Assembly (NCBI GenBank): GCA_048013815.1
Contig: CM106585.1
Span: forward strand, 17,298,001-17,362,000
Reading direction: 5' to 3'
DNA length: 64,000 nucleotides
Source of the DNA: Setoptus koraiensis
Taxonomy: Eukaryota; Animalia; Arthropoda
The notes beneath the pieces are model-generated. The model was not told where the DNA came from and ran no database searches. It was given only the letters and a program-made list of their open reading frames with translations. The translations under genes were made by a program, and so were the position numbers. Positions 30,134 through 53,808 of the stretch are shown here, one piece after another. The number at the start of each line of letters is the position of its first letter. Position 1 is the first letter of the stretch.

Positions 30134-30550
30134 ATTGAATATTCGAATTTCTGTTGACAGTTTCATCTGCTCGTTCGATGGTCAGTGTTCGATGGTTGGA
30201 GCTCGAAGTTCGGTGGTCACAATTCGAACTTCGAAACTCGTAATCGATGCACTATAACAAAGCGTGCGCCATTGACTGATTGGTGTGTCTAACTGAATTA
30301 CACATTGTGGCGAGAATGACCATCAAAATCTTACTAAATTCCGCACGCAAGAAATCAACATGTGTATCATGCTGGGATAGAAATTTGGAGAACTTGTATT
30401 TATTCTGTCATCTTTTCGGCTACTCTGATTCGACAGGCATAGATGTTCAACTCCGACATGTTGTCACATACTCGCATCAATATTCCAACGATACTCATCT
30501 TTCCAAAAAATTAAGCGCTCGAGATACTGATTCAATCAGTATCACTTGTT
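30134..30550 (+). mobile_element. 3' half of HINE-like element (family 1)
   Basis: TTCGA-rich satellite, conserved block, then AAATTAAGCGCT and the GATACTGAT-tca-ATCAGTATC hairpin followed by ACTTGTT. Confidence 0.75.
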
Positions 30551-30567
30551 AATTTCGAATTTCGGTT

Positions 30568-31061
30568 GATGTAGCGATCAGTGCCCCGCTCCGATTTTGA
30601 TAAAACTTCTCGTACGGGTATGTCTTGACCCTAATAGACCGGAAAAGTTGGTCCGGAAGTGCGGAAACTTCCGGTTCCGGTTTTACATGAAATTGAAGCT
30701 AGAGGTCTGAAACTCACCAGAGAGACGTTACTGACCACGCTAAACATGATGGCATAATTTTCAGCTCTGTGCGACTTCCGGTTTTCCAGATGTTTAGATA
30801 TATTTGACGTAAGAAGACTTGAAGCGGAGAGATTGGAGCTCCGCTTTGCTCAGGGATGAGTATGTGATGGGTCTGAGAACTCGGTCTACGGCCTCGTATT
30901 CTGGAGGCCGTCACATCTCCGTCGTCGCTCCCGCGACGACTGCGTGCGACGGGAACCCTTCGGGTAGGGTTGATGAGCGCTTCGGGTACTTTTCCGAATC
31001 TTTCATCGATGACCTGAAAAATTAAGCGCTCGAAATACTGATTTGATCAGTATTACTTGTT
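30568..31061 (+). mobile_element. MITE left arm and GC hairpin core fused to a HINE 3' end
   Basis: TIR-like GTAGCGATCAGTGCCCCGCTCCGATTT, CCGGAAGTGCGGAAACTTCCGG, hairpin core at 30870-30990, and subTIR plus hairpin at 31019-31061. Confidence 0.6.
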
Positions 31062-31689
31062 TTTCAAGTTGATGATCTTAGATGTGGGGACAGTTGTGTA
31101 GAAATGAGTGGCAGACATCAAAAATCGATTAGGCTAGATTGTGTATGGCACAGTGCCAGCTGTCTCTAGAAAGTTTCAAGAAATTATCCTGGTGAGAATA
31201 ATTTTTAAAATTTCACCTACTGCACTGGGTGGAAATTTGCCATAACTTTCAGCCGAAGTTCAGGGAAAATCCGTTCGAGGTCGCCTTTTGTACAGTATTT
31301 GTTGTGTGAGTGAGATTGAGTGAGCGATGTGTGGCACATGTGCGTTATCTGCAGGCTCAGTGAGTTAGGGATCTCAGTTGTCGCTTCTTTTCACTCGGGT
31401 ACCACGGTGTACCCGACACGCGCGCGATAACCCCCGTAGAGTCATAAATTGGTTCTGGTCTCGGTACTTATCTCAGTGTTATGGCATGCAGATATAAGCT
31501 AATTTATTGTCTAACGAATCGGCATCGATTCAATCATTTCAATCTTCATAATTTGATAACAATATCACAAAACTTGCAATCAACTCAGTGTTCACAGTTT
31601 GGTAACAATAGGACGATTTGCCGAGTATCAGTAATAAGTCTATTTACAATATGTTAACAATATCACAAATTTACAAAACAACAATGAAC

Positions 31690-32159
31690 AAATTACAATT
31701 TACTAATTTACAGGAGGTGCTCAAAATGTTCGCCTTGGGCTTCGAAACATTTCTCGCAACTTTGAAATCAAGGGCATCTGATGGAAAATTAGAAGATGAC
31801 CCGGTGACCTTCCTCTTCAATAACAATAATGCTTCCCGGTCAGGCATCTCGACTAGACTTCTAGCAAGCACATCACTGAAGACATCCTTAATGAGGTGGG
31901 TCCACAAGAAGTAATCCAGGGGGTGAGATCTGGCGAGCTGGCTGGAAACTCGAACGGGTTTCGATTTGGTCGGAACGGCGTCGCTTGAGACCCTGAACCA
32001 GGGTCTCAAGCGACGCATTTGCCAAATGTGCTGGAGCCCCATCTTGTTGGAAAGTAATATCGTTGAAGGCATCATCGAGTTTATTCTTCATGGCAGGAAC
32101 AACCAGACTAGTTATGAATTCAGGATAGGATATCTTGTTAACCGTACCATGAAAAACAG
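31690..32159 (-). mobile_element. Degenerate DD41D-type Tc1/mariner transposase fragment
   Basis: FHGTVN, FQQDGAPAH and frameshifted PAR-PDLTPLDYFLW, LKRKV. Cut by a HINE end at 32160. Confidence 0.75.
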
Positions 32160-32198
32160 GTGATACTGATTCTATCAGTATCTCGAGCGCTTAATTTT

Positions 32199-33790
32199 TT
32201 AGCGCTTAATTTTAATTAAGCTGCTATTGGGGTGGTGATGATGACTAGATTTATTCACGTGACTATGTAATCCTATGGAGGTTTGACTTAGTCAAATTTG
32301 TGAGAATCCTGCTAGATATTACACATGTATTCCGATGTAGATTTGACTTGGTCTATTATCGCTTTACTCGAAAATATTTCGTATGCAATCCTATGGAGAT
32401 TTGGGGTATTCTATCTAATAGCGCCACACTCCGATTTTCATGAAACTTCTTAGATGGAGCCCACAGGGCCCCTTGACAATACTTTGAGTGGTCCGGAAGT
32501 GCGGAAACTTCCGGTTTCACAGAAAATTCAAGATACAAGCTTGAAACTCGGTATACAGCTGTATATCAACGTGCAAACCACAATGCTGCCGATTTCAGAT
32601 CACCGCCACTTCTGGTTCTTTGGATATTCACCTAAAACCGTGATTTGGGGCATGTCCGGGATGAAGCGGGGTATTCTATGGAATAGCGCCACACTCCGAT
32701 TTTCATGAAACTTCACACCTGGGGCCAGAAAGGCCTCCTGAGAACACTTCTAGTGGTCCGGACGTGCGGAAACTTCCGGTTCCGGTTTTACATAAACTTG
32801 CGGATACAGCTTAGAAACTTAACATAGAGCCTGATATGACTGTGATGACAACGTTGAAGTCATTTTGATATCTGTTGGACTCCCGGTTTTAGAGATAATG
32901 AGCGATCGTAATAGAATTTGGCAGTAGACAGTCTTTTGCACAACCTACTTTCGTGTATGGATTGCAGTCATGTGAGCGGAGGGTAGAGGGCGCAGCCCGA
33001 TACCCGAAGCGCTCATCAACCCTACCCGAAAGGGTCCCGCCGCACGCAGTCGTCGCGGGAGCGACGACGGAGATGTGACGGCCTCCAAATTACGAGGCCG
33101 TAGGCCGAGTTCTCAGAACAATCTCAGGCTTATGTTCGAGTGCAGCGAAGCTCAAATCTGCGGAAAATTTCTTGCTGGCCAAACTGTAGGCCTGTTTATT
33201 AAATATCTTCTCACCCAGATAGGTTTGGAATGAGTTTGTCTACCCGAAAATAGTGAAAATACCCTAAAAAATACCCCAGAAACCGCCAGCGGTCGTCGGG
33301 TATCAAGACACGCCTCCTGTGCAGTACCTCGGTTATCTCGGGAACTAGGAATTTCCGCACTTCCGGAATACCCATTCCGGTATCAAAGTACAATACCTTG
33401 CCCGAAAATATCCAAAATACCCCGAAAAAAGTGTGGCGCTATTAGATAGAAAGTGTTCTTATCCATGGGTCAGAGTTCGATGGTCACAATTCGAAGTTCG
33501 CTGGTGACATTGCGAAGTTCGATGGTCACAAATCGAACTTCGAAATTCGAAATTGAAAATCCGAATCTCTGATGAGAGTTCCATCTGCTCGTTCGGTGTT
33601 CCATGGTCACAGTTCGAAGTTCGGTGGTAACAATTTGAAGTTCGGAGATTGAAAATTCGAATTTCCGATACTAGTTCCAGGTGCTCGTACAGAGTTCGAT
33701 GGTCACAATTCGAAGTTCGATGGTCACATTCCGAACTTCGAAATCCGAAATTGATGCACTGTAACAAAGTGTGCGCCATTGACTAATTGG
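32199..33790 (+). mobile_element. HINE family-1 copy interrupted by a MITE
   Basis: 5' AGCGCTTAATTTTAATTAAG at 32201 and block A; it resumes with the TTCGA satellite and block B at ~33460. Confidence 0.65.
32402..33450. mobile_element. MULE-like MITE with duplicated left arm and GC hairpin core
   Basis: TIR TTCTATCTAATAGCGCCACACT / AGTGTGGCGCTATTAGATAGAA, a second left arm at ~32667, and the core at 32974-33116. Confidence 0.65.
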
Positions 33791-34778
33791 TGAGGTCAAT
33801 ATGAACCTATACCGAAAGTTTCATCAGAATCTGAGTGTGGCACTATTCGCTACAACAACCGACTTGTTTGCTTAATGATACTGAACTAAAGTTACTTTGG
33901 CGCGCATCTTACTTGATTGACATCTACCTGTCACAAAAAGTGGTTTGTTAACTAATTGATTATACCTTTGCCGTTGCCTATTTATCTTTTGTCGTTTAAA
34001 TCGCTCGCTTTACCATACCATTGTTGACGAATGTTCAAACTCTATCCTGTAAACTCATTGTCTGTTTGTGTATTGCACACATGTGACATGTGCTTAAACG
34101 CACAGATAGTGAGTTTATCTGTAGTAGAAATATATATAATGTATGTCCCATGTACTCCAATACACACATGAAAAATAAACTCTAGTTAGGCAATGACGTA
34201 CTTCGTGAAGCAGTCGATAGCGATTAGAATGTGTTTGTTGTTGTTAGTTGTTGTTGACAATGGGCCGTGAAAGTTCATTGCCAACACGGCAATTGGTTTC
34301 ATGATCTGAAATGAGGTCATGCAACCATGTTATTTAGATCTAGTCACCTTATATAATTGGCATGTGTTGCAACTTCGAACGAAGTCTTAAACATCTATGT
34401 TTATTGATGGCCAGAAGTACATGTCCTTGACCTTCTATATCGTTGGTTCAATGCCGGCATGCTCAGCAGTGTTTTGTTCGTGCTTTTCGGAGATGATCTC
34501 ATTTCTAAACTTGGAGGGGAAACATAGTCTCGAATTCTAATATAAATGGCCTCGTTTCATACAATACTCATTTTGGGTGTTCTTTCGATTAGGTCCCCAC
34601 TCAGAATTGAATGAAACTCCGCACACGAGCCCAGTAGGGGCCCCACATTGTGAATTAGGTAGTCCGGAAGTGCGGAAACTCCCGGTTCCGGAGACACAAA
34701 AATGTTGAGATAGAGCTCTGAAAATTCATAATTAGGCAGATGACAACTAGCGGAGCACGAGGAAATAAATTTTGATTT

Positions 34779-35617
34779 ATAGCGCTTAATTATAATTAAG
34801 TGGCTACCGGGGTAGTGATGTTGGATACGTTTATTCACGTGACTATGTAATCCTTTGGAGGTTTGACTTAGTCAAATTTTTGAGAATCCTGCTAGACATA
34901 ACACATGTATTCCTATGTAGATTCGACTTGGTCTATTATCGCTTCACTCGAAAATATTTCGTATGCAATCCTATGGAGATTTGACTAGGTCAAATTTGTG
35001 AGGGGTTCGGTGGTGACAAATCGAAATGCGAAAATTGAAATTTCGAATTCCTCATGAGAGTTTCAGCTGCATTGTCGGAGTTCGATGGTCAGAGTTCCGT
35101 GATCAGGGTTCGATGGTCACAATTCGTAATTCGAAATTGAAAATTCGAATTCCTGATAAAAGTTTCAGCTGCTCGTACAGAGTTCGTTGGTCAGTGTTCG
35201 TAGTTCGATGGCCGGAGCTCGATGGTCAGAGTTCGAAATTCGAATTTCTGATAAAAGTTTCGGCTGCTCAGTCAGTTCGATGGTCACAACTCGATCTCCG
35301 AAATTCGAAATTGATGCACTATAACAAAGTGTGCGCCATTGACTAATTGGTGTGTCTAACCAAACTATTCATTGTGGCGAAACTGACCATCAGAATCTTA
35401 CTAAATTTCGTAAGCAAGCAATCAACACATTTATCATGCTGCGATAGCAATTTGGAGAACTAAGATTTATTCTGTCATCTTTTCGGCTACTCTGATCTGA
35501 CAGGCTTGGATGTGTATCTCCGACGTGTTGTCACATACTCGCATCTATATTCCAACGATACTCGTCTATCCAAAAAATTAAGCGCTCGAGATACTGATTG
35601 AATCAGTATCACTCGTT
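34779..35617 (+). mobile_element. Complete HINE/DINE-1-like non-autonomous Helentron (family 1)
   Basis: 5' subTIR with palindrome (34781), central TTCGA-rich tandem repeats, 3' subTIR (35581) and a 9-bp stem-loop (35590-35610). No ORF. Confidence 0.8.
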
Positions 35618-35622
35618 ATGAT

Positions 35623-35858
35623 ACTAGTAATCGGGTGAGAGATTATCTAGAGACCAATCCATTTGCGAGTGATTTTGAAGTGCTGAGGCCTGTTTTCAAT
35701 TTAGATTGCAGTAGGTCCACTCTATCGAAACTCGATTTGGAATCGCATGTTTCCGCTTCGAAGTTTATTCTCACAAACGAGCATCGGCCTGCTAGGTTGT
35801 TGTTGTATTGTTACGAAAGAGAAGATTGGGGTATTGAGGATTGGCGGTATGTTATTTT
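35623..35858 (+). mobile_element. Tc1 transposase fragment (HTH to pre-DDE region)
   Basis: NPFAS..CSRSTLS..SKFILTNEHR.ARL..DWGIEDWRYVIF, cut just before the expected SDE by a HINE 5' end. Confidence 0.65.
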
Positions 35859-36529
35859 TTAGCGCCTTATAACTAAGTGCTTATGATGTAGTGTTGTGCG
35901 ATCCTGAAGATCATGCATGAGTATCCACGCATGATATGATGGTGGATACTAAATTCGTGCATTTCATAGATGATGCCAGTGAATATTCACGTACCGATTT
36001 ATTTGTAGATATTCACAGTTTTCGATCTTTAGAGTCACGCGCTGTGTGCTTGCAAACATTAGCACTAGTATAATCAGTGCTTAGTGAGTGTGTAGGCTGG
36101 AATGTGCTTGGGAGGTGGGGGGTACACTCAAGCTTGAGATTCAAAAGTTCATCCACCTTCCAAACACACATTCACTAGAGAGGTGGATAGGATTTTGAGT
36201 CTCGGGCTCATGCAAAGGTTCATGTAGCACTGTGCGATACACAATCTGTGCAAGTCTAATCAATCTTCTGTTTCTAGTATCGGCGGTATCTGCCATTAAC
36301 TAGCACATGTGCCTCTACAGTATGTGCGGATTTCGGAACTGTTCTCACCAGGATAATTTCCTGAAACTTCCTAGAGACTGTTAGCACTGTATCACCTACA
36401 ATCTGTGCAGGTCTGATCAATCTTTGATGTCTGCCGCTCATTACTACGCAAGAAACCATCTTCACATCTAAAATCAATAACTCGAAAAAAATTAAGCGCT
36501 CTTATAGTGGTATGATCAGTATAACTTGT
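35859..36529 (+). mobile_element. HINE family-2, short copy
   Basis: The degenerate 5' end matches the reverse complement of 53760-53808. The 3' end is AAATTAAGCGCT-CTTATAGTGGTATGATCAGTATAAC. Confidence 0.7.
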
Positions 36530-38039: not shown

Positions 38040-38566
38040 GTACTCACCCACAACCACTAAACTTGCAGATCTGAGAAAGGAGAAGCCTTGTGGAAATACG
38101 CCAATCGCCAAAATGGAATGTGTCAACCACGCAGCTAAGAGACTAGGTACCCACTTGCGCAAGTTAAGAAACGATCCAGCTAATCGCACACTCAGGAAAA
38201 GGAATGAAGGGTCCCAACAGGTTGACATGTCGTCTGATGGACGAATTGACAGCATAGTACGGAAATGCAATTCGTGAGAATAGTGGTGATATTAGAGCAA
38301 TGCAAGATGCAATTGAGGCAATCGTCGACCACAAAAGCTCGACAGATAGTAAAATAAACCACGGCAATTGCCCTCAGGGCGAAGACAGTTGGAGTTGCTA
38401 CAATAGAGCAATAGCTATAGAAAGGAAACAACAGCCACATGCTTAAACTGCTGATCCATGCATTTGGGGGAAGGTCCGCCCAGTAATTAGAAACCTGTCA
38501 GAAGATGATCCTCTCATTAGATGTATTGGTGGTCTAACGCAGAATGCCATCGAATGTTTGAATCCA
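38040..38566 (+). mobile_element. Decayed CxxH-type DDE transposase (Mutator-like/Kolobok-type)
   Basis: KMECVNHAAKRLGTHLRKL, RLT..YGNAIR, HGNCPQGEDSW and RCIGGLTQNAIECLN, with frameshifts and stops. Superfamily uncertain. Confidence 0.7.
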
Positions 38567-39411
38567 CAAGTCATACTGATTAGGTCAGTACCTCGAGCGC
38601 TTAATTTTTTGTATAGTTATGTTGGAATAGAGAAGCCGGAAACTTCCGGTTCTGGTTTTACCTCAAGTTAGAGCTAGAGGTCTGAAAATCACCATACTAG
38701 CCTTCCAAAGGACGCTGAATACAATGGCATAATTTTCAGCTCGGCGCGACTTCCGGTTCTCGAGATATCGGCATACTTATTGGTTTGGAAGACCGGAAGT
38801 TGACGAATTTCAGCTTCGCTGCACTCGGGGATGAACCTGCGATGGGTCTGAGAACTCGGCCTGCGGCCTCGTATTCTGGAGGCCGTCACATCTCCGTCGT
38901 CGCTCCCGCGACGACTGCGTGCGACGGGAACCCTTCGGGTAGGGTTGATGAGCGCTTCGGGTATCGGGCTGCGCCCTCTACCCTCCGCTCACATGACTGC
39001 AAACCATAGACGAGAGTAAGAGACTAGAAGAAATGTTAAAAGCCTCGGAACATGATTCAAGCACAGATCTAGCGCTGTGCCATCTTGTGTGGCGACATAT
39101 CGGAGCCTCTAGGGCGCACGTATTCACTCGTGCGCGCGGATGCTTCGTCCCGAGCGGGATGCCCGCGCGGTTTTTCCTGAAAATCTCCGCAACCGGAAGC
39201 CACACACACGTAAAACGAACTCCATTGTGCTCAGAATGTTCATATCCTGCTGCATATCAAGTTCCATAGCTCTAGCTTGAAATTTGTGTAAAACCGGAAC
39301 CAGAAGTTTCCGCACTTCCGGACCAGCGAATCCGTTGTTTGGGGGCCCTGAGGGCCCCATGTGTGAAGTTTGGTGGAAATCTGAGCGTGGCACTATTCGC
39401 TACAACACCCA
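38566..39411 (-). mobile_element. HINE 3' end fused to MITE core and TIR
   Basis: Hairpin and AGCGCT at 38572-38601, GC core at 38845-38995, and TIR AAATCTGAGCGTGGCACTATTCGCTACAACACC ending at 39411. Confidence 0.6.
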
Positions 39412-39733
39412 ACAAGTCAATCTGTCAGAAATCAACCCCTTTTAATTAGAACTGTCAAGCTAATTGATTAAGCAAAAAGGTGTAATGAAGGGGGTGTTGA
39501 CAGCCAAGACAGTATGAATTAATCAAGCCGATTTTGAGAATTGTAAGTGTATAAGAACCCCTGTAATAGCATGTATCATGATCAGTCGAATGGTGAAGAA
39601 GTAGAACATATACTCTCACAGTATCTAATACATACACATGCGAATGAAAATTAAATAAAGTAAAGTAAAGTTTATAATACGCATTAGTCGCCGAACCATT
39701 TCATTTTTGCAGTAGAACAAATCAGTGCAATTT

Positions 39734-40965
39734 TTAGCGCTTAATTTTAATTAAGTAGCTATTCGTGTGGTGATGATGGATACGTTTATTCACGTGAGTA
39801 GAACAAGTCAGTGCAATTTTCTATCTAGGGAAAATTAGCACAAGGAAGGCATCGGGAAGCATCTCGCAGGTTTCATCATTCTAAATCTATCTAGTTTGTT
39901 AGTACAGAGAAAGCTAGGAGGCGGAGTCATTAGGTAACAATTCTACAGTGAAGGCTGAGATGCTTACTAGTCAAAATTGGAAGCAAGAATGCTAGCTGTT
40001 TACAAATTGGAATTATCACTAGGGAAGCTAGAAAGGCGAAAACTAGGTAGATTTAGTACAATAGAACGCTTAAATGTTGGTTTATTAAATTTAACACAGT
40101 AACAGCTAGGAGGCAGAATCACTAGAAAACATTGATTCAGAGAAGGCTGAGATGCAAACTAGGTGGATCTAGCAAAGTAGAAGGCTAGCTGTTGACAATT
40201 AAGATCTAGCGCACGGGAAGTTAGTAGTCCTGAAACTAGGAGATCACAGTACAGTAGAAGCTACTCAAGTTGACAAGTGTCTCGCAGCACAAGTTATGCT
40301 ATGATTGATCGAACTAGGTGAAAGTGACGAACTTGAAGCTGAGATGCCCACTAGAATGATTTAGCAGAGCAGAAAGCTACTGATTAATTAGGATCAAGTG
40401 CACGAGGATCGAATAACAGCTATCTTACATTATTGGGTCGTAATCAGCACTGTGAAAGGCACAGAACTCAGTCATGCTGAGTGAAAGCTGATGATGCACA
40501 TGCTCTCAGCCATAACAAACACAATTAATATTGTCAAAGGCACATAACTGTGCTGTACTGTGTGGAAGCTGAAGATGCACATGCTCTCAGCTATCACACA
40601 CACAATTAATACTGTCAAAGGCACATAACTCAGTCATGTTGAGTGAAAGCTGAGGATGCTCATGTTCTCAGCTATGACACACACAATTAGCACAGTCAAA
40701 GGCACATAACTTGACTGAACAGCGTCATAGCTGAGGATGCACAACTTCTCAGCTATGACACACACAATTAGCACAGTCGAAGGCACATAACTTGAATGAG
40801 CTGTGTCAGTTGTTCTCAGCAATGACACACACAATTAGCACAGTCAAAGGCACATAACTCAGTCATGCTGAGTGAAAGCTGATGATGCACATGCTCTCCG
40901 CTACAACAGACACAATTTATATTGTCAAAGGCACATACCTGTGCTGTACTGTGTGGAAACTGAGA
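39734..40965 (+). mobile_element. HINE-like element (family 3 body)
   Basis: 5' subTIR at 39736. The body is homologous to 45090-45500. 3' end not found. Confidence 0.6.
40445..40965. repeat. 81-bp tandem repeat, ~7 units
   Basis: AAGGCACA recurs at 40455, 40536, 40617, 40698, 40779, 40846 and 40927. Confidence 0.85.
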
Positions 40966-41959
40966 ACCAGAACACAACGGAATTATTTGTGGTGTGATTT
41001 GTTGTCGGAGCCATGAATCTCTCGCAAGTCAGACTGATAAATGAGCCAGCAAACACACCACCGCCGAGCGCCGCCATATAGACGCCCGCTGGCGAGACCG
41101 CCGCCGCCGATGTTTGCCTTGGCTGGCTCGTTAGCAGAGTGTCTTTATTGCTCGTTATCTCACTTCTGACTCTTGTGAGTCACAAGTTGGCTGACACTGC
41201 GAGCCGGTCGCCGGCAACGGGTACGAGTGTTGCGATACTCGCGCATTACGTGTATCGTGCGGCGGCGGCAGCAAGTTGCAACAACGGCAACAACAAGTTG
41301 CTCGCAAGTAATTGTTAGCCAGGCAAGGTTGCCAGCAATAGTCGGCAATGGAATTATGCAAGCGCTCGCCTCGCGGCGAGTGGCGTGCCTACATAAAACA
41401 ACGCCTGTCTCTAGTTTTGGCATAGAATTGTCAACATTAATATCTTGGTCACCACACAATCGATTCAGCCATCCAGCTAGATCCTCTTGGCATATAAATA
41501 TTCAACATAAGATTTGAATGGCCGAAATGGCCTAGGCTCAATGGAAGTCGATTGTCGGGTGTTGTTTAGATGGTTATTATTATGCACCCCCTCCTAGCCT
41601 TCATTCATCCATTCTATTCATGCTGATCATTTTGGCTCAACTTTTTCGCTGGAGAGAAAGATTGATGATGTGTGTTCAACATGAATTCTCCAAATAAATG
41701 ATATTTGTTAATGGAGTAATCAGTTTGAGATTACCTGTTGGTCGAATGGAAACAATTCAACTTACCTGAAATATTATTATTCCAATAGTCGATTATCAGT
41801 GGAGCGTAAAAAATTTTGCAATCATTGTTGAAGCATTGATTATGGGTTAACTTGAAAATTGAAGATTCTTCAAAAAGAATTGTATAATAATATCGTCCAT
41901 CTGCCAAACTCCCATGACCTAAAATATGAAAAGGTGGAACACAATTAAGAAACTCGTTT

Positions 41960-42707
41960 TCCTATGTAGATTCGACTTGGTCTATTATCGCTTCACTCGA
42001 AGATATTTCGTATGCAATCCTGAGGAGATTAGACTAGGTCAATTTGGTGAGGGATTCGGTGGTGACAAATCGAAATTCGAAATTGAAAATTCGAATTCCT
42101 GATAACAGTTCCATCTGCCCGTTCGATGTTCGATGGACAGAGTTCAATGGTCACAATTCGAACTTCGAAATTCGAAAATTTAAAATTCGATGAGAGTTTC
42201 AGGTGCTCGTTCGATGTTCGATGGTCCGAGTTCGATGTTCGATGGTCATAGTTCGATGGTAGCAATTCGAACTTCGAAAATTGAAAATTCGAATTCCTGG
42301 TGATAGTTTCATCTGCTCGTTCGATGATCGATGGTCAGTGTTCGATGGTCGGAGTTCGATGGTCACAATTCGAAGTTCGAATGAAATTCGAATTTCGATC
42401 GAGTCAGTCACAGTTCGATCACAAATTCGAAGATTGGAACAATTCGAGTTAATCGAACTCGAATGAAAATTCGAAATCCTGATAAGAGTTTCAGCTGCTC
42501 GTTCGATGTTCGATGATCAGAGTTCGATGGTGGTGGGCAATCAACATGTGTATCATGCTGCGATAGAATTTTGAAGAACTTATGTTTATTTGGTCGCTCC
42601 ACCAATTATTTGGTCCTCCTTTGGCTGCTCTGATTTGACATAGTTGTTTATCTCCGACATGTTATCACATACTCAGGTCTATATTCCAAGGATACTCGTT
42701 TATCCAA
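41960..42707 (+). mobile_element. HINE family-1 body, cut just before its 3' subTIR
   Basis: Block A, TTCGA satellite and block B, ending at GATACTCGTTTATCCAAA. Confidence 0.7.
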
Positions 42708-44574
42708 ACAAGTTATACTGATTATACCAGTATAAGAGCGCTTAATTTTACTAGTGAACGATCTTAGAGGTTTGGACAGTTTATTAAGTAGTGATAAGTG
42801 CTAGCTGTCTCTAGAAAGTTTCAAGAATTCATCCTGGTGAGAACAGTATCGAAAATCACACATACTGTATAGGCACATGTTCTCAATAATGGCCTATAGC
42901 GCTAATACTAAAAACAGAAAATTAATTAGACTTGCACAGATCGTGTATTAGACAGTGCTAGATGTCTCCAGGAAGCTTCGGGAATTTATCCGGATGAGAA
43001 CAGTTTCAAACATGCCACGTGATGTATGGGCATACCTGATCAGATAGAGAGACGGAAAATTGATTATGAGTTGACTGAATATCATCGAAACGGATAGGTG
43101 GGAACATGTTCAGAAATCGATGACTATACATGACATCCGTCATCCGAAATTTCTCTCTGTCTCGAAATCGACCAATTGATGGCTGATCATACTTGCACAG
43201 AATGTTGCGAGCAACATGCACAACACACACACAGAGTATCATCAAAACGGATAGGTGGGAACATGTTCAGAAATCACAATATTCACATGACATCCGTCAT
43301 CCGAAATTTCTCTCTGTCTCGAAATCGACCAATTGATGGCTGATCATACTTGCACAGAATGTGGCAAGCAACATGCACAACACACACACATAGTATCATC
43401 AAAACGGATAGGTGGGAACATGTTCAGAAACCGTGTGCTAGGAAGGTTGAGTGACTTAAGTTTCCACTCCACGCTATTTGAAATAGCTAAACCTATCTCG
43501 TTATAGCATCGATCCAATTCCCCACTATACATTAACCTCTGCATGAGCCCGAGACTTAAAATTCAATCCACCTCCCTAGTAAATGTATGTTTGGGAGGTG
43601 GACGAACTTTCGAGTCTACTTTCAAGCTTATTAAGTAGTGATAAGTGCTTACTGTCTCTAGAAAGTTTCAAGAATTCATCCTGGTGAGAACAGTTTCGAA
43701 AATCACACATACTGTATAGGCACATGTTCTCAATAATGGCCTATAGCGCTAATACTAAAAACAGAAAATTAATTAGACTTGCACAGATCGTGTATTAGAC
43801 AGTGCTAGCTGTCTCTAGAAAGTTTCGAGAATTTATCCTGGTGAGAACAGTTTCAAAATTGGCACATAATGTATGGGCACATGTGATCAGGAATCGCATG
43901 TATTGTATGAGCTCACATGATCCAGAATTGCCTATAGCGCCAATACTAGAAACAGAAAATTGATTAGACTTGCACAGATCGTGTATGGCACAGTGCTAGC
44001 TGTCTCTAGAAAGTTTCAAGAATCTATCCTGGTGAGAACAGTTTCGAAAATTGCACATACTGTGGAGGGACATGTGCCACAAAATGGCCTATAGCGCCAA
44101 TACTAGAAACAGAAAATTGGAAACCAGCAACAACAACCACCCGCAATAAACAACCAGCATCAACAGCAACAACAGGTGCCTCAGCAATAGCAACAACAAC
44201 AGCAGCAATTGCAACAAACAACAGCAGCAAAATGAGGCCCATAAGGCTCTATGACGTGTGCATCATTTGCCTGGGGCCTTTGACACGGCCACGGATGCTC
44301 CGGGACTGTGGGCACGTTTATTGCGCCACCTGCATCAGGCTCTGGATGGAGACCTCGCCCAACAATCCATTCAGGGTAGTGGATGAGACGGCCGAATTTG
44401 TGCCAATATTCGGCGTGTCCGGCCACATAATTGGATGGAGGGAAAAGCTCTATTGGGCTCCTTGTCCCGTCTGTAAAAAAATATAGAAAGTGGTATATGG
44501 TTTGTTCTACCCACGTGAATAAACGTATCCATCCGACCCACATCAATAGCTACTTAATTAAAATTAAGCGCTAA
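42708..44574 (-). mobile_element. Chimeric HINE (family-2 body, family-1/3 5' module) containing a RING ORF
   Basis: 3' hairpin and subTIR at 42712-42742, three 157-bp units, cargo at 44120-44502, and a 5' palindrome/subTIR at 44553-44572. Confidence 0.65.
44232..44486 (+). CDS. 84-aa C3HC4 RING-finger protein
   Basis: CIIC..DCGHVYCATC..(43 aa)..CPVC. Intact ATG to stop, no introns. Confidence 0.7.
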   Translation: MRPIRLYDVCIICLGPLTRPRMLRDCGHVYCATCIRLWMETSPNNPFRVVDETAEFVPIFGVSGHIIGWREKLYWAPCPVCKKI

Positions 44575-44576
44575 AA

Positions 44577-45052
44577 ACGGTATCATTGTTGTAATCTCCT
44601 CTATATAGACATGAGTCTGATTGTATCGGTCTGATTCCTAGATTGCAGATGATACCATCCAATTTCTTTTTCCAACACAGTGGGGCCTGCTTAATACCAT
44701 ACAAGGCTTTATTGAGTTTCAGGATCTTTCCTTTAGGGCAATTTACCCCTTCGGGCGTGTCGATATATATCGTTTCTTCGAGATCGCCGTTCAAAAACGC
44801 GGTGCGGACATCAAACTTGACCACGACTGCGAGGAATAGCCTTATTGTTCCCTGCCGAAGTACCGCGGCATAGGTCTCAAAGTAATCAATACCTTCCCTT
44901 TGAGCATATCCGCGCACAACCAACCTGGCTTTACATTTGTCCAGTGTACCATCATCAAGTACCTTCTTCTTAAATACCCAGCGGGTAGATAAAGTACTCT
45001 CTCCGCCGTTCTGTGTTACTATCGACCATGTTTTGTTATCAATCAGCGATTT
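44577..45052 (-). mobile_element. Ty1/Copia reverse transcriptase fragment
   Basis: STRWVFKKK, KARLVVRGYAQREGIDYFETYA, DVRTAFLNGDLEETIY and LNKALYGIKQAP. Confidence 0.9.
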
Positions 45053-45845
45053 CTAGCGCTTAATTTTAATTAAGTTGCTAAATCAGTGCAACCAACAAAT
45101 CAGTGCTATTTTTTTTCTAGAAAAATTGGTAGAGCGAAGGCGTCGGGAAGCATCTCGTAGGTTTCATCGTTCTAAATTTATCTAGTTTGTTAGTACAGGG
45201 AAAGCTAGGAGGCGGAGTCATTAGGTAACAATTATACAGTGAAGGCTGAGACGCTAACTAGTAAAAATTAGCATGCGATAATACTAGCTGTTTACAAATT
45301 GAATTTAGCACTAGGGAAGCTAGGAGTGCAAAAACTATTATTGTTAGTACAATGAAACGCTTGAATGTAGATTTTTAAAATCCAGCACACGTAAAGCTAG
45401 GAGGCGGAGTTATGAGAGAACAATAATACAGTAGAAGCTGAGACGCTAACTGGTAGAAATAAGCATGCGATAATGATATCTATTTACAAATTTGTCTCAT
45501 CAACACAAATAAATAGCACACCGCACACAGGTCTCGCACTATAACGCATAGTGCGCCATTGCTGACTTTTTGTGTCTCGAAAAATTATTTATTGTGACTA
45601 AATTGGGTATTATAAATCCACCAAATTTTGTACGCAAGCAGTCAACATGTTTATCTAGCTATATTGAAAATTTGAGAGACGTAGATCTTTTCTCCCAAAT
45701 CTCGCGGACTCGCTTCAAATAGCTCATACATTGAAATAGCAAACAACATAGAACATGTGCATCTTACAGCACATACTGTCCTATTGCCCCTCGATGTATT
45801 TATCTAGATGGTTATCTCCGACATGTCATTTTATACTCGCTTCTA
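45053..45845 (+). mobile_element. HINE-like element (family 3 body plus block B), terminal 3' hairpin missing
   Basis: 5' subTIR at 45055. 45535-45845 is homologous to the family-1 3' block. Confidence 0.65.
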
Positions 45846-46943
45846 TTTAAGGGTAAATTCGCATCCTGTTCGGCGTTCAACCTCACTTGAACAGAGCTTA
45901 AAGGATGGTTCATGGATAGAGACAACCTTGGCCGGGCACTAAATTTTCACAGTCCATTCATGTTCAATACAAGCTGGACTCAGATCAACCTAAACAACAT
46001 GAACACAATCAACGACATAAAGACTGACTGGTTGAATAACAACAAAAACCCCCATTCGTTCGATTTACTCGGTCGAAAACGCCTCTGCGACTCGAGTGAT
46101 GGCTGCCGTCATGCTCATCCAATTCATTGCGAGATGGATGATGAGAAGGCCATCTCCGAGTACGCCGCCCCCACATTCAACCACAACTCCCAGCTGATGA
46201 GGGCAGAATACGTTCCAACTCTTAGACAAATGGATGATGGCAGGGTCTGCAAATTGACCTACACAGGACCGTCATACATACATCACGACCATGAGAATGG
46301 ATGCAGAGTCTTTTTAGACAAATTTCCAACCAAGAACATGGGATTGGATGACGAAATCTGTGAGAGAGACTTAGTCTCGGACCAAACAGTCCCTTGGAAG
46401 ATCGACTTCTGCGTCAATAATTTGGGAGATTTCGAAAAGCTTGTCAGTGTTTAAGTGGCCGAAGAAGAGGATGAGACAATAGTTTATTGTTATCCTAGAG
46501 AGATGACAATCGATGGTCGTCCACATCCTTGTCCACCGTACCCCTTTTCCGTGAGCAAAAAACGCTTGTTGACAATCGAAGGTAAGAAATGTATCAATAG
46601 CAATGCCATACGGGGCAAATCAATGAATTCAGTTGATGTTTATTCAGCTCCAATCGATACATTTTCAACTCACATAGGTATTGATCCTATTGATAGTGGA
46701 TCGAGAGTTGTCATCACAACAAAGGATCAATTCGGCCCAACTGTCATCACAGTTGTCCTCATAGTACTATTTTCGATATTGGCTGTCGCTATCGTACTCA
46801 TCGTAAGGAATTTCAGATGGAAACTGAGAAAGGTACAAGATTCTGTGGTCAGAATGCAAAGAAGAGAGGTGGTGAGGAGGTCTATTCGATACAGCTATAT
46901 TGAAATGTACACAATAATAAGCATATTGAAAATTTTGCATTAA
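45846..46943 (+). pseudogene. Envelope-like type-I membrane glycoprotein fragment
   Basis: One frame with in-frame stops (TGA ~45886, TAA 46452-46454), 10 Cys downstream of the 45912 ATG, N-glycosylation sequons, a single TM helix (TVITVVLIVLFSILAVAIVLIV) and a basic tail. Confidence 0.55.
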
Positions 46944-46991: not shown

Positions 46992-47070
46992 GTGCACATT
47001 GATCGTCGAAATAATTGCACATTGATCGTCGAAGGGTGTGCACATTGATCGTCGAAATATGTGCACATTA
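46992..47070. repeat. ~24-bp tandem repeat x3 (TGCACATTGATCGTCGAA core)
   Basis: Directly visible. Confidence 0.8.
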
Positions 47071-47441
47071 TTAGAATGAGCGCTCAATACGAACGTGCTC
47101 TGTGCAGTAGTGATGGGGGGAGCCCCCTCCTCCCGGCCGGGAGGAGGAAGCAAGCCCCGGGAGCTGTAGCTCCTCCTAGCTCCCCCTGGCCGATCTCGCA
47201 CACTAAAAAGTACAGGGTGCACAGAAAAGACGGTCGTAAAATCACATTAAAAGTATCGGTTTTTTATTCAAAGATTATCGCACGGCCTGTATTTTATCCT
47301 GCTCGAATCTTAAGATCAACCATGGTATCGATAAAAAATGCCAGGAACGATTTCTTATTATATCTTGATTTCAGGCAAACGATGATCGCGAGGGTTACCA
47401 TGAAGATGAGTACCAAACCAATAAAAATTATAAGTCGTGTC

Positions 47442-47700
47442 GGTTATTGTATCTAACACGTACCACGCCCAATTTGGGTATTTTGGGTATTTCTAGGTAG
47501 AGTATGATGCCTTGAGACCGGAAAAGGTATTCCGGAAGTGCGGAAATTCTTCGTTACCGAGATAGCCGAGGTACCGCATTGTGGGTATTTTAGGGTATTT
47601 GAGGGTATATTGACGGTACAATCGGTCGTACCCACCCGCACGGACATCGGGTAGGGTACTGAGGTCTCCACACCGAGGGTAGATCATTTCTATGAGCCAC
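47442..47700 (-). mobile_element. MITE arm (same family as 49593-50500)
   Basis: GGTTATTGTATCTAACACGTACC TIR. The body is the reverse complement of ~50340-50500. Confidence 0.7.
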
Positions 47701-47711
47701 AGGAAATGAAT

Positions 47712-48826
47712 ACAAGTGATACTGATTCAATCAGTATCTCGAGCGCTCAATTTTTTGGATAAACGAGTATCCTTGGAACATAGACCGGAGTATGTGATAA
47801 CATGTCGGAGATAAACAACTATGCTTGTCAGATCAGAGCAGCCGAGGAGCGATCAAATAAATACAAGTTCTTCAAATTTCTATCGCAGCATGATACACAT
47901 GTTGATTGCCCACCACTATCGAAATCTGATCATCGAACTTCAACGAAGCAGATGAAACTATCATCAGGAAATCGAATTTTCAATTTCGAATTTCGAAGTT
48001 CGAGTTGTGACCATCGAACTTCCAATTGTAACCATCGAACTTCGGACACTGAACTACGAACATTGACGGAGCAGCTGAAACTATCATCAGAAAATCGAAT
48101 TTTCAATTTCGAATTTCGGACTTCGAATTGTGACCATCGAGCTCTGACCACGGAACTCTGACCACGGAACTCTGACCATCGAACATAGAACAAGCATCTG
48201 AAACTCTCATCAGGAATTCTAATTTCGAAGTTCGAATTGTGACCATCGAATTCTGACCATCGAACTGAGAACTGTGACCATCGAACATCGAACGAGCAGA
48301 TGAAACTATCATTGGGAATTCAAATTTTCAATTTTCGAATTTTGAATTTTGAAGTTCGAAGTTCGAATTGTGACCATCGAATTGTGACTATCGAACATCA
48401 AACTCTGACCATCGAACATCGAACGAGCAGCTGTAACTCTTATCAGAAATCCGAATTTTCAATTTCGAATTTCGAAGTTCGAATTGCGACCATCGAATTG
48501 TGACCACCGAACTCTGACCATCGAACATCGAACGAGCAGGCGAAACTATCATTAGGAATTCGAATTTTCAATTTTGAAGTTCGATTTGTCACCACCGAAC
48601 TCCGCACAAATGTGACCTTGTCAAATCTCCATAGGATTGCATACAAAATATTTTCGAGTGAAGCGATAATAGACCAAGTCGAATCTACATAGGAATACAT
48701 GTGTTATGTCTAGCAGGATTCTCACAAATTTGACTAAGTCAAACCTCCATAGGATTACATAGTCACGTGAATAAACGTAGAGCCCAGAACCATCCCAATA
48801 GCTGCTTAATTAAAATTAAGCGCTAA
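47712..48826 (-). mobile_element. Complete HINE family-1 copy
   Basis: Hairpin 47718-47738, subTIR 47742, satellite, and 5' palindrome/subTIR 48804-48824. Confidence 0.8.
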
Positions 48827-48897
48827 TAAGCGCTAATAATTATTATCTTGCTGCACTTATTATTATGAAATAAAATTATTATTAACTTGGTTTAAAC

Positions 48898-51371
48898 ATG
48901 CATTATTTGTTTCTTATTTTGATATTGGCTCTGCCAAAAGCGTCTGATCCGGCTTTCACGGCCATTCAAAAGGCTAAAATATTATACATTTATTCCTTAA
49001 ATGATGAGGATATTTGTGCAACACGTGAAAATGTAAAGGAGTTACGTGATTTGGGCCAACTAGACGTAGACGACCTACCTACCCAGCGAGACCTGGATAA
49101 TTTTAAAAATTATTACTTCACCTACGGCATACAAACCCATCAGGGCCAAAAACGATCTTCTCCGTGGAGGGTGACACCTGACATTCTGGCGAAAGTGCAT
49201 GAGTTGGCGAACGACGGCCAGAGACCAAGCAGTTCAAGAACTATCGCAGATGCTGTCGGTCTTTCGCACCCTACGGTCCTCAAGATTCTAAAGAAAGAAT
49301 TAAAGCTCAAACCGTATCATTTTAGAACACTGCACTCCATCATGGATCATGAGGCCGATCGCTTGGAATTCGCTGACATTATATCAGAGAAGACCAACCG
49401 AAATCAAGACCACAGTTTTATAAACAAAATCGTATTCTCTGACGAGGCTATTTTCAGTTTGGTGGGGATTGGAAATAAGCACAATACAATATTTTGGTCG
49501 AATTCCAATCCGAACCACCAATACGACAGCAAACGACTGGGCACGAAAAAGTTGATGGTATGGTGCGGGTTCTCGGTGGATAAGAGATTTGGGGTGTTGT
49601 ATGGAACACGTACCCACCCCGATTTCCTCCAAACTCCACACATGTGCACCGAATGGGCCCCAAAGAACAAATAAATTAGTCCGGAAGTGCGGAAATTTTC
49701 ACTTCCGGAGATATCGAAAAATCAGTTTTATTGGTCTCACAGAAGTCTTATATCGTAAATTTTGGCATGAACGCGCAGCTCTCGTTGCAATATACGCGAT
49801 GGCATCATATGAAATCATATTAGACAATTCGATCCCGAGAAATTCACTGTTTTCTATATCCACCACTTCCGGTCCGAGAATTAACGCGAATTGAGGAATC
49901 TGTTTGGCGTAATTGTTCATTCAGGCTTGCAACTTGAACACAAGGCCGAACAGAACCCGGCCCGATCGCGGGCCCCGCCCACTCGACCCCCAGCCTACGG
50001 AAAACAATCCTTTCCCGGGATGCGGGACGGCCCGTAGGGCCGTCACGAGGCAGGCCGTCAATCGTCCCGCTGTCGGCCGAAGGCCGACGGCGTGGACGGT
50101 AGGCCGGCCTATGCGGGTGGGCCAAAGGCCCACCCGCACATCGTGGCACCTCCTGAGGGGCACAGCCCCGAAGTGCGTGCCCAGAATCCCCTCGATGATA
50201 CGAAGAGCCTTCCTAAGTTAAATCACTTTTATTCTGCTCCTGTGGCTGCTAGGGAGAATCTACTTTCGGTGAATGACCATCAGTACCACACCGGATGCGA
50301 ATGCGGAATGGCACTGCCTCCCGTACCCCAAATATGCCCACAATTACCTTAAAATACCCACAAGGCGGTACCTCGGGTATCTCGGGAACGAAGGATTTCC
50401 GCACTTCCGGAATACCTTTTCCAGTCTCAGGGCATCATACTCTACCCAAAAATACCCAAAATACCCAAATCGGGCTGGGTACGTGTTCCATACAATAACC
50501 GAGATTTGGCCCATATTTCTTCGACGGCCGAGTTAACAGTGACACTTACATTGCAATGTTGAAAGAAACTCTATTTAACAATCAAGAGACAGTGAATTTA
50601 TTCAAGAACGGTTCACTCATCTTCATGCAAGACGGTGCACCGCCGCACACAGCGATAAACACAAGGTCATTTCTAAATGCAAACTCCCCATATTGGATCG
50701 GCAAAAAATCGAATTTTGTCCAGTGGCCGCCCTATAGCCCAGATTTAAATCCTCTGGATTATTTTTTGTGGGGGTACATGAAGGCGCAAGTCTACAAGGA
50801 CCGTTATGTATATGGAAGTTTAGAGGAGCTCAAAAGAAAAGTAACCGATGTATTTAATTCGATACCACAGAAGATGTTAGCAGATTCTATACAATCGAGT
50901 TTCATGAGGAGAATATTCTTTGCAAAAAAGCTCGGTGGAAAACAGGTTGATTTTGCGGTAGAGAACAAGCCTGTCAACGAGTCTCTAAATTGGTTATCAC
51001 ATGACGAGGAACTTTTGCTGGCCGTTGCCTCGCTTAATCTTGACACTATTGACAATCTCAGGGCTTTCGACGAGCAAGATGAGGCCACTGAAGATGATAA
51101 TATTGACATTTGTCCCGCGGCAGGGTCTAGAAATAAAAGATCATCCGAAATTTGCAAATTAGAAGAGGAAGCCCTACGCAACGTGACCAACTACTGTGAA
51201 AGACAGAAGAATGAGGAACAGAACACCGAAGAAAAGGACAGTGAAGGACGTTGCAGGAAACGAAAATGTCCGAAATGCCCCAAGTGTCCTGCGTGCCAGC
51301 GATGCAACCAAAGTCCGAGGATAGGTGCTAGGCCAGCGCCCAAAATCCGTCTAACAGGAATCAAAGGATAG
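48898..51371 (+). CDS. DD41D Tc1/mariner transposase, 518 aa once the MITE is removed
   Basis: HTH region, FSDEA, QDGAPPH-(41 aa)-PDLNPLD. Excising 49593-50500 plus one TSD restores the frame (KRFG-PYFFDGRVN). Confidence 0.85.
49593..50500. mobile_element. 908-bp MULE-like MITE with 9-bp TSD
   Basis: TSD GAGATTTGG at 49584-49592 and 50501-50509, ~30-bp TIR (TTGTATGGAACACGTACCCAnCCCGATTT), and no transposase. Confidence 0.85.
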
Positions 51372-51378
51372 AAAACAT

Positions 51379-51458
51379 TGTTACAATAACCAATACTCTG
51401 TTACAATAACCAATACTCTGTTACAATGACCAATATTCTGTTACAATAACCAGTATTC
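51379..51458. repeat. 20-bp tandem repeat x4 (TGTTACAATAACCAATACTC)
   Basis: Directly visible just after the transposase stop, followed by AATAAA. Confidence 0.9.
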
Positions 51459-51475
51459 AATAAAGATAATAAACA

Positions 51476-53808
51476 ACAAGTTATACTGATTATACCAGTA
51501 TAAGAGCGCTTAATTTTTCCAGTGAACAATTTTAAAGGTTTGGACAGTTTATTAAGAAATGATAAGTGCTAGCTGTCTCTAGAAAGTTTTTCAAGAATTT
51601 ATCCTGGTGAGAACAGTTTCGAAAATTGCACATAATGTATGGGCACATGTGATCAGAAATCACATGTATTGAATGAGCTAACATGATCCAGAATTGCCTA
51701 TAGCGCCAATATTTGAAACAGAAAATTGATAAGACTTGCACAGATCGTGTATGGCACAGTGCTTGCTGTCTCTAGAAAGTTTCAAGAATTTATCCTGGTG
51801 AGAACAGTTTCGGAAATCGCACATAATGTAATACTTGCACAAAATGTTTCGAGCAACATGCACAACACATACACGCAGTATCATCAAAACGGATAGGTGG
51901 GAACATGTTCAGAAATCGATGACTATACATGACATCCGTCATCCGAAATTTCTTTCTGTCTCGAAAACGACCAATTGATCCCTGATCATACTTGCACATA
52001 ATGTTGCGAGCAACATGCACAACACACACACGCAGTATCATCAAAACGGATAGGTGGGAACATGTTCAGAAATCGATGACTATACATGACATCTGTCATC
52101 CGAAATTTCTCTATGTCTCGAAAACGACCAATTGATTTCTGATCATACATGCACAGAATGTAGCGAGCAACATGCACAACACATTCACGCAGTATAATCA
52201 AAACGGATAGGTGGGAACATGTTCAAATATCACGATATTCACATGACATCCGTCAGCCAAAATTTCTTTCTGTCTCGAAAACGACCAATTGATTTCTGAT
52301 CATACTTGCACATGATGTTGCGAGCAACATGCACAACACATTCACGCAGTATAATCAAAACGGATAGGTGGGAACATGTTCAGAAATCGATGACTATACA
52401 TGACATCTGTCATCCGAAATTTCTCTATGTCTCGAAAACGACCAATTGATTTCTGATCATACATGCACAGAATGTAGCGAGCAACATGCACAACACATTC
52501 ACGCAGTATAATCAAAACGGATAGGTGGGAACATGTTCAAATATCACGATATTCACATGACATCCGTCAGCCGAAATTTCTTTATGTCTCGAAAACGACC
52601 AATTGATTTCTGATCATACTTGCACATGATGTTGCGAGCAACATGCACAACACACACACGCAGTATCATCAAAACGGATAGGTGGGAACATGTTCAAATA
52701 TCACGATATTCACATGACATCCGTCAGCCAAAATTTCTTTCTGTCTCGAAAACGACCAATTGATTTCTGATCATACTTGCACATGATGTTGCGAGCAACA
52801 TGCACAACACACACACGCAGTATCATCAAAACGGATAGGTGGGAACATGTTCAAATATCACGATATTCACATGTGATCAGAAATCAGATGTATTGAATGA
52901 GCTAACATGATCCAGAATTGCCTATAGCGCCAATACTTGAAACAGAAAATCGATAAAACTTGCAAAGATCGTGTATGGCACAGTGCTTGCTGTCTCTAGA
53001 AAGTTTCGAGAATTTATCCTGGTGAGAACAGTTTCGAAAATCGCACATAATGTAGAGACACATGTGCCACAATATGGCCTATAGCGCCAATACTAGAAAC
53101 AGAAAATTGATTTGACTCGCACAGATCGTGTATAGCATCGATCCACCTCCTCACAATACATTAACCTCTGCATGAGCCCGGGACTTAAAATTCAATTCAC
53201 CTCCCTGAAATGTGTGTTTGGGAGGTGGACGAACCTTCGAGTCTTAAACTTGTATGTAGGTTGTTGCATGCTCAGGAGGTGAACTTATTGTTTGAGCTCA
53301 AGCTAGTCCACCTCCCAAGCATGAGTCGCCCCACTCTATTTTGAGTAGCTAAACCTATCTCGTTATAGCTTCGGTCCACCTCCTAACTAGACATGAGCCC
53401 GAGACTAAAAATTCAATCCACCTCCCTAGTAAATGTGTGTTTGGGAGGTGGACGAACTTTCGAATCTCAAGCTTGAGTGTACCTCCCACCTCCCAAGCAC
53501 ATTCCTGCCTACACACTCACTAAGCATTGATTATGCTAGTGCTAATGTATGCAAGCACACAGCGCGTGACTCTCAAGATCGAAAACTGTGAATATCCACA
53601 AATAAATCGGTACGTGGATATTCACTGGCATACAAAGTCGGGGTATTCACAAGCACACAGCGCGTGAATCACCATAGCACAATTGGTGAATATCCTATGA
53701 AATGCACGAATTAAGTATCCACCATCATACCGTGCGTGGATATTCATGCGTGATTTCCAGGATCCCACAGCACTACATCATAAGCCCTTAATTAAAATTA
53801 AGCGCTAA
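51476..53808 (-). mobile_element. Complete HINE family-2 copy
   Basis: TTATACTG..CAGTATAA hairpin and subTIR at 51481-51510; 5' CTTAATTAAAATTAAGCGCT at 53787-53806. Confidence 0.8.
51822..52870. repeat. 157-bp satellite, ~7 units
   Basis: AAAACGGATAGG recurs at 51886, 52043, 52200, 52357, 52514, 52671 and 52828. Confidence 0.9.

Follow-up and report, generated by a model that had tools for sequence, protein, structure and literature searches.

What kind of element has built the repeats that crowd a gene-poor stretch of 24 kb in the DNA of Setoptus koraiensis, and to which known class, if any, does it belong? The stretch lies in a window of 64,000 nucleotides (64 kb; the whole of the DNA analyzed here, positions 17,298,001 to 17,362,000 of contig CM106585.1, assembly GCA_048013815.1), and all matches to the terminal motifs described below fall between 30.5 and 53.8 kb in the coordinates of the window. 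The stretch is, in all likelihood, a nest of non-autonomous rolling-circle transposons of the Helitron2/Helentron type, i.e., of HINEs, the class that includes DINE-1 of Drosophila. Judged from their sequences, the elements form one family, defined by the subterminal inverted repeat (subTIR) AGCGCTTAATTTT, with at least two 3'-end subfamilies (A and B) and three body types (A, B, and D).

Elements of the Helitron2 type are known to have asymmetric terminal inverted repeats, a 5' T, a 5' hairpin formed with the 5' repeat, and a 3' repeat placed just upstream of a 3' hairpin about 20–30 bp from the end; their hairpins display compensatory changes, and they insert after TTTT (PMC3627910). HINEs and Helentrons have subTIRs of 12–15 bp, the 5' one 2–4 nt from the terminus, and a short palindrome between the 3' subTIR and the terminus, while HINEs insert into TT or T-rich sites without modifying them, contain central tandem repeats or a microsatellite, and have no coding capacity (PMC4067079). 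Two elements are assigned to the same family when their subTIRs are identical over at least 11 bp, and 15 families are listed in Table S2 of Thomas et al. 2014 (PMC4067079).

Results

Seventeen termini of two types

When the window is searched for the 5' motif AGCGCTTAATTTTAATTAAG with at most three mismatches, 8 matches are found against an expected number of 0.01; among them is a site at 53783 (+) that mirrors the end at 53806, which is palindromic. For the 3' motif AAATTAAGCGCT, with at most one mismatch, there are 16 matches against 0.52 expected, and this count takes in both types of ends, since the 5' motif starts with the reverse complement of the 12-mer. Sorted by their flanks, the sites fall into eight 5' ends and nine 3' ends (Table 1). 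An original prediction, made from the same DNA, had claimed precisely these 17 termini, and all are present, at most 6 nt from where it had placed them. Profile hidden Markov models of the two end alignments reveal no terminus beyond these 9 + 8 in the 64 kb; that the profiles recover their own 17 sites follows from their construction, and the informative part is the absence of further matches.

Anatomy of the ends

Both types of ends share a single 13-nt inverted repeat, which reads AGCGCTTAATTTT inward from either end. Its 11-nt core is exact in 15 of the 17 termini, has one mismatch at 47742, and is degenerate at 35861. In spite of this common subTIR the ends are asymmetric, because a hairpin tail is found on one side only. 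In the eight 5' ends, AGCGCTTAATTTT stands between a short T-rich leader and TAATTAAG, while in the nine 3' ends its reverse complement is followed by a stem-loop.

Consider first the 3' ends. When all nine are aligned together with their nine mutually unrelated outer flanks, they are alike through an A-run, AAATTAAGCGCT, 2–3 nt of spacer, the stem-loop, and ACTTGT followed by zero to two Ts. From the fact that the likeness stops there it follows that the terminus lies 30–32 nt beyond the inverted repeat. The stem-loop, with a stem of 9 bp and a loop of 3 nt, starts 2–3 nt past the subTIR and ends 6–8 nt before the terminus. In the alignment, 96% of the stem cells are paired, compared with 21–54% when the partner strand is slid by 1–3 columns. 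Three types of pair are found at the outer position of the stem: four copies have G-C, the three B-type copies T-A, and the copy at 31030 A-T. The compensatory stem change that had been predicted, at 31033–31053, is real. As single-stranded DNA, the 3' hairpins fold with −4.4 to −6.8 kcal/mol (z from −2.4 to −2.9).

Consider then the eight 5' ends, which also have unrelated flanks. Here, the likeness begins 2–5 T-rich nucleotides before AGCGCT, with leaders such as TTTTT, TTTAT, TTTCT, and TTATT, and the subTIR pairs with bases downstream of it (GCTTAATT/AATTAAGC) to form a 5' hairpin, for which folding gives −6.5 and −7.4 kcal/mol (z of −4.3 and −5.9).

Target sites and junctions

Target-site duplications (TSDs) were sought by taking all combinations of 0–8 nt before the 5' repeat and 0–6 nt after ACTTGT. 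The five complete units described below have no consistent TSD; only chance matches of 2–4 nt appear, at inconsistent offsets. As a positive control for the same test, a miniature inverted-repeat transposable element (MITE) at 49591–50500, in the same nest, is flanked by GAGATTT(GG), a duplication of 7–9 bp, and from this it follows that the method is able to detect a TSD. With the prediction, which had seen no TSDs, this agrees in that no TSD length or offset is common to the five units.

Where do the elements insert? Three one-sided junctions, at 31061, 32200, and 42707, bear on this question. In each of them, comparison with uninterrupted HINE copies places the break inside a T-run of 4–6 nt beside the 3' repeat, on the T strand of the incoming element. 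To exemplify, at 32200 the next unit starts directly in the T-run of a solo 3' end that is read in reverse, and at 31061 the terminus of P2 (Table 1) adjoins the T-run of a reversed B-type body fragment (31062–31230). As far as sequence comparison can tell, these junctions would fit with insertion between Ts.

Direct comparison with an empty site was attempted in several ways. In the contigs of four public runs (see below), no joint that skips a unit is found among the 15 of 260 joints listed. There is no empty site for E1 in the window: the MITE-like sequence on its left stops exactly at the 5' end of E1 and does not resume after E1 or E2, where scores are within the range of shuffled sequence. 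Exact look-ups of both transposase pieces gave no match, and the DD41D transposase, in whose transposon E4 and E5 sit, has a best relative that is only 57% identical, which is too distant to serve as a paralogous empty site for either unit.

One further junction has a different appearance. At 39708–39830 a direct repeat of 23 nt, GTAGAACAA(A/G)TCAGTGCAATTTT, brackets a 66-nt 5' module (39731–39796). This could be either a nested start in the T-run of another D-type copy or a long duplication, as in one-ended insertions of Helitron2.

Units, bodies, and subfamilies

Five units (E1–E5) have both ends in the right order and orientation, and seven further pieces are one-ended. The bodies, delimited by self-comparison and Tandem Repeats Finder, are of three types. 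Body A has a 5' module of 208 nt, a CGAA-rich repeat of about 100–130 bp in 2–5 copies, and a 3' module of 340 nt; it is carried by E1, E4, P1, and the units at 32196–33792 and 41956–42706. In E1 the order of the parts is a T-rich leader, the 5' hairpin of subTIR and inverted repeat, 5' module A, CGAA-rich tandem repeats of about 100 bp, 3' module A, the 3' subTIR, the 9-bp stem-loop, and ACTCGTT. Body B has a 5' module of its own, core repeats of 157/191 bp, and an array of a 157-bp repeat. The short unit E2 is without this array, and its 5' subTIR is degenerate (AGCGCCTTATAAC). Body D, with two copies of a 192-bp repeat and an 81/162-bp array, follows the 5' ends at 39731 and 45050; for the former no matching 3' end was identified.

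When the last 60 nt are compared, three subfamily-A 3' ends are 90–93% alike and three subfamily-B ends 83–93%, while A and B are 72–78% alike. This is less than the 80% demanded by the rule of Thomas et al., and therefore there are at least two subfamilies; the 3' ends at 31061 and 38566 stand apart from both. The body of E3 has the 157-bp array in 2.2 copies and the 157/191-bp core repeats, while its 5' module is 91% identical to 39731–39806. In E3, an A/D-type 5' module is thus found together with a body and a 3' end of type B, which means that mosaics occur. That several bodies have common ends and exchange 5' modules, as had been predicted, is borne out by the three bodies and by E3.

Table 1. 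Termini, units, junctions, and MITE copies in the window
Feature	Position	Strand	Description
5' ends (n = 8)	32201+, 34781+, 35861+ (degenerate), 39736+, 45055+, 44572−, 48824−, 53806−		Position of the A of AGCGCT; sorted by flank
3' ends (n = 9)	30519+, 31030+, 35586+, 36500+, 32186−, 38596−, 42737−, 47742−, 51505−		Sorted by flank
E1	34776..35617	+	Complete subfamily-A unit, 842 bp; 86% identical to E4 over 484 nt, 88% to P1 over 340 nt
E2	35856..36529	+	Complete short subfamily-B unit, 674 bp; 93% identical to E5 over 240 nt
E3	42707..44577	−	Subfamily-B 3' end and body joined to A/D-type 5' module
E4	47712..48829	−	Complete subfamily-A unit; about 5 copies of the 100–130-bp CGAA-rich repeat
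E5	51475..53811	−	Complete subfamily-B unit, 2.3 kb; 157-bp tandem array of 6.6 copies
P1	30134..30550	+	3' part of subfamily-A unit; left side cut by the 500-N assembly gap
P2	30551..31061	+	Unit without 5' end; MITE-like body, GC-rich core; A-T outer stem pair
Solo subfamily-A 3' end	32155..32200	−	Hairpin, subTIR, T-run; outer side cuts mariner-like reading frame fragment
Subfamily-A unit	32196..33792	+	5' module A, nested MITE (32403–33455), CGAA repeats, start of 3' module A; broken at about 33792
Divergent A-like 3' end	38566..38640	−	Degenerate stem; MITE-like sequence inward; outer side cuts decayed transposase-like frame
5' end with D-type body	39731..41000	+	192-bp repeat in 2 copies; 81/162-bp array at 40449–40937
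Subfamily-A unit, truncated on both sides	41956..42706	+	Stops in its own A-run, 3 nt short of the expected 3' subTIR, at the 3' terminus of E3
5' end with D-type body and diverged A-like 3' module	45050..45850	+	Truncated about 30 nt short of where the 3' subTIR is expected
Junction	31061		3' terminus of P2, then TTT and reversed B body without its repeat and hairpin
Junction	32200		Reversed A-type hairpin, repeat, TTTTTT, then directly the 5' end of the next unit
Junction	42706/42707		A-type unit stops three bases into the A-run before the expected 3' repeat; 3' terminus of E3 follows
MITE	49591–50500		
Related MITE copies	32403–33455, 30563–30990, 38620–39410, 47440–47711, 34574–34775		

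Copy number and presence in other samples

Contigs of the four public runs, which by their labels represent three samples and two organisms, were placed on positions 31001–37000. The two organisms behind the runs are nearly identical in their unique contigs. In these runs, the summed contig depth rises from about 10^2 in unique stretches to 10^4–10^5 in HINE modules, i.e., it is 100- to 1000-fold higher there; in run X4, a depth of 93–170 over unique sequence compares with 37,000–82,000 over modules. Such a summed depth is not itself a copy number, and its ratio points to hundreds of similar pieces genome-wide.

Contigs that bridge a junction between unit and flank were found for the 3' end of E2 in all four runs, for the 5' end of E2 in X1 and X5, and for the 5' end of E1 in X1. 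In each of the four runs, one contig with approximately the depth of a single copy joins ...ACTTGTT (31061) to TTTGGGGTATTC (32400, the start of a MITE) and thereby skips 1338 bp; this contig could be another locus, or an allele, without 31062–32399.

The original prediction spoke of an active system. No sign of current activity is seen: homologous modules are 76–94% identical, none of them nearly identical, and the 3' junction of E2 is found in all four runs.

Coding content

Most open reading frames (ORFs) of at least 70 aa between 30 and 54 kb, outside repeat arrays and MITE copies, were scanned against Pfam. The domains found were RVT_2, DDE_3 (in the DD41D transposase), and a RING finger, and nothing else; in particular, no Rep, helicase, or endonuclease domain is present among these ORFs, from which it follows that all copies are non-autonomous. 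An Rfam scan of the region gave no family, and on this ground an origin from tRNA or another RNA was rejected.

The RING finger (Pfam zf-RING_UBOX, zf-C3HC4) is the only Pfam domain found inside a HINE unit. Its ORF, at 44232–44486 (+), is intact, encodes 84 aa, runs antisense inside E3, and stays open in the upstream direction to at least 44100. A search of a large protein collection gave neither a word-sharing homologue of this ORF nor an exact copy. The claim that the system shuffles genes is not supported by these results, as the enclosed sequence is partly a nested MITE and the RING ORF is without a detectable second copy or relative.

Of the foreign sequence that the prediction had described as enclosed by the units, the part at 32403–33455 is an ordinary nested insertion, a MITE whose family produces TSDs. 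The family has terminal inverted repeats of about 25 nt, an internal CCGGAAGTGCGGAAACTTCCGG motif, and a GC-rich hairpin core, and excision of the copy at 49591–50500 together with one copy of its TSD restores an uninterrupted ORF of 518 codons for a DD41D-type transposase. E4 sits in the 5' part of this mariner-type transposon, with its 3' end adjoining half a MITE, and E5 sits in the 3' untranslated part of the same transposon. Several MITE copies end exactly where a HINE end starts.

Other sequences in the window

A fragment of a Copia-type reverse transcriptase (RVT_2, E = 1.8e-27) is found at 44564–44923 (−), between the outward-facing HINE 5' ends 44577 and 45050. At 31671–32156 (−) there is a mariner-like transposase fragment, which resembles the C-terminal DDE_3 part of a DD41D element and is cut at TTTTT by the HINE 3' terminus 32155; the upstream half of its ORF is not in the window. 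The HINE 3' terminus at 38566 cuts into the decayed frame of another DNA transposon at 38060–38565 (+), of which ...GGLTQNAIECLN is one piece. The Pfam scan of this interval covered two minus-strand ORFs, neither of which has a match. Right after the truncated HINE body that starts at 45050, two consecutive ORFs of 180 and 162 aa (45846–46943, +) follow, the second with a hydrophobic stretch near its end, and neither has a Pfam match.

The window as a whole is eukaryotic. Besides an assembly gap of 500 Ns at 29634–30133, it contains genes for an ion-transport protein and an innexin, as well as a long receptor-like ORF.

Discussion

Comparison with known elements

The DINE-1/HINE-like architecture that was originally proposed for this stretch is supported by every structural feature tested. 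Like HINEs and DINE-1 (PMC4067079), the present elements have subTIRs of 12–15 bp, the 5' one a few nucleotides from the terminus and holding one arm of a short inverted repeat, a palindrome after the 3' subTIR, T-rich ends, no TSD common to the complete units, central tandem repeats, no coding sequence, and a high copy number; they differ in that no microsatellite block was identified. With non-autonomous Helitron2 elements, e.g., Helitron-1N1_CQu (PMC3627910), they share the asymmetric inverted repeats, the hairpin of the 5' repeat, the 3' repeat directly upstream of the 3' hairpin, the 5' T, compensatory changes that preserve the hairpins, and, to judge from the junctions, insertion after T-runs, and the differences are those of sequence and family identity only. 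The Cg_HINE elements of the Pacific oyster (Vojvoda Zeljko et al. 2020, PMC7492417) are modular in the same manner, with conserved flanks (subTIR, inverted repeat, and palindrome) around varied satellite-like central repeats, sometimes with two arrays in a row, and there, too, no partner was matched; host phylum and all sequences are different, and the present arrays are short (2–7 units). Since modular ends with exchangeable tandem-repeat cargo are thus already described in oyster and Drosophila HINEs (PMC7492417, PMC4067079), the modularity is not new.

Canonical Helitron1 elements belong to the same rolling-circle class and have a 3' subterminal hairpin and no TSD. They were rejected as a model: the ends are not 5'-TC/CTRR-3' (the 3' end is ACTTGT(T)), inverted repeats and a 5' hairpin are present, and the target is T-rich rather than A^T.

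Is the family a new one? Among the 15 subTIRs in Table S2 of Thomas et al. 2014 (PMC4067079), there is neither a match of 11 bp to AGCGCTTAATTTT nor any resemblance, and by their rule the family is therefore distinct from those 15. In the full-text literature the subTIR string occurs only in unrelated primer or construct papers and never in a transposon context. For gall midges, the literature search gave no paper on HINEs or Helentrons. The 3' end pattern has no match in metagenomes; the 5' motif has five metagenome matches, all without T-run or continuation and thus due to chance, and none in viral contigs. For the suggestion that the family may be undescribed, these comparisons cover the 15 published subTIRs and the full texts, and leave out Repbase and Dfam.

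Alternative explanations

What weighs against an assignment to the Helitron2/Helentron type? The 3' subTIR ends 30–32 nt from the terminus, just short of the 38–60 bp in HINEs of mites (PMC4067079), and this distance is at the upper edge of the 20–30 bp of Helitron2 (PMC3627910). There is no autonomous Rep/helicase partner in the 64-kb window, nor was one with these ends seen in the other data consulted. Covariation in the 3' hairpin is limited to a single base pair, with about two independent events of compensation; its weight is modest, though it points in the expected direction. At none of the three T-run junctions is the second half of the interrupted host present, so that insertion is there indistinguishable from recombination or template switching at the T-run. 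Finally, since empty sites were sought in vain, the evidence for where exactly the elements end, for TT as their target, and for insertion without TSDs consists of the five complete units and the comparison of flanks.

With these points in mind, it may be asked whether another single-strand transposase, of the HUH/Y1 type, or a different transposase altogether could have produced the elements, their likeness to Helentrons being convergent. The unseen partner would agree with this, as would a subTIR unlike the 15 published for Helentrons and HINEs, but all the structural hallmarks of Helitron2 and HINEs are present together, and wherever a partner has been found, this combination goes with the Rep/helicase (RepHel) proteins of Helitron2/Helentron (PMC4067079, PMC3627910). 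Convergence is therefore regarded as unlikely.

A somewhat smaller probability still is given to a cut-and-paste MITE family with terminal inverted repeats of 13 bp, moved by a DDE transposase. The perfect 13-nt inverted repeat common to both ends is what such a family would display, and its members would likewise be short, non-coding, and abundant; yet in nine of nine copies a conserved hairpin tail of 30–32 nt lies outside the repeat, at one end only, the five complete units lack the common TSD that the true MITE in the same nest does show, and the junctions are in T-runs and depend on orientation. Least tenable, and hardly credible, is the idea that the copies go back to local segmental duplication or to the expansion of a satellite, with their junction motifs conserved but without transposition, for even if the 17 termini all lie within 24 kb and many units are truncated, the units occur in both orientations between unrelated flanks and the summed contig depth suggests hundreds of copies genome-wide.

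A possible mechanism

By analogy with published families, non-autonomous Helitron2/Helentron-type elements such as these would be moved by a Rep/helicase, possibly with an AP-endonuclease domain, that is supplied by an autonomous partner elsewhere in the genome. The protein would nick in the T-run at the 5' end, whereupon its helicase would peel off one strand, with the 3' subTIR and its hairpin serving as the stop mark. According to a proposal by Bao and Jurka, the 5' hairpin is opened when the 3' inverted repeat pairs with the 5' one, and the end point is determined in this way (PMC3627910). The single strand would then go in between two Ts without duplicating the target.

The T-run beside the element's own 3' subTIR may be such a target, and if it is, this would explain both the self-nesting and the local pile-up of copies. 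Terminators that are missed, or alternative ones that are used, together with template switching, could create mosaics of 5' modules, tandem-repeat cargo, and 3' modules. A bolder version of the same idea is that the family is still mobile, that the T-run by its 3' subTIR is a preferred and orientation-specific target, and that the resulting nests are places where terminator bypass or template switching swaps 5' modules, seeds arrays (of 157 bp and others), and captures fragments of the host such as the RING ORF; this version is regarded as doubtful.

Implications

A family of hundreds of copies that encodes no protein and whose inverted repeats are short can easily end up in an annotation as a MITE or among the unclassified repeats. 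When its members are recognized as being of the Helentron type, annotators can delimit each copy by a T-run and AGCGCTTAATTTT on one side and by AAAATTAAGCGCT, the hairpin, and ACTTGT on the other. The same reading explains the dispersed short arrays of satellites of about 100 bp and 157 bp, and it points to a Rep/helicase partner. The self-nesting in T-runs and the mosaics of modules and cargo make up a small and clean example of a behavior known from DINE-1 and oyster HINEs, so that the general interest is modest, no new question is opened, and the main value lies in genome annotation. If, on the other hand, the family should be mobile still and target its own T-runs, it would be a tractable natural system for the building of satellites and the shuffling of genes by Helentron-type elements.

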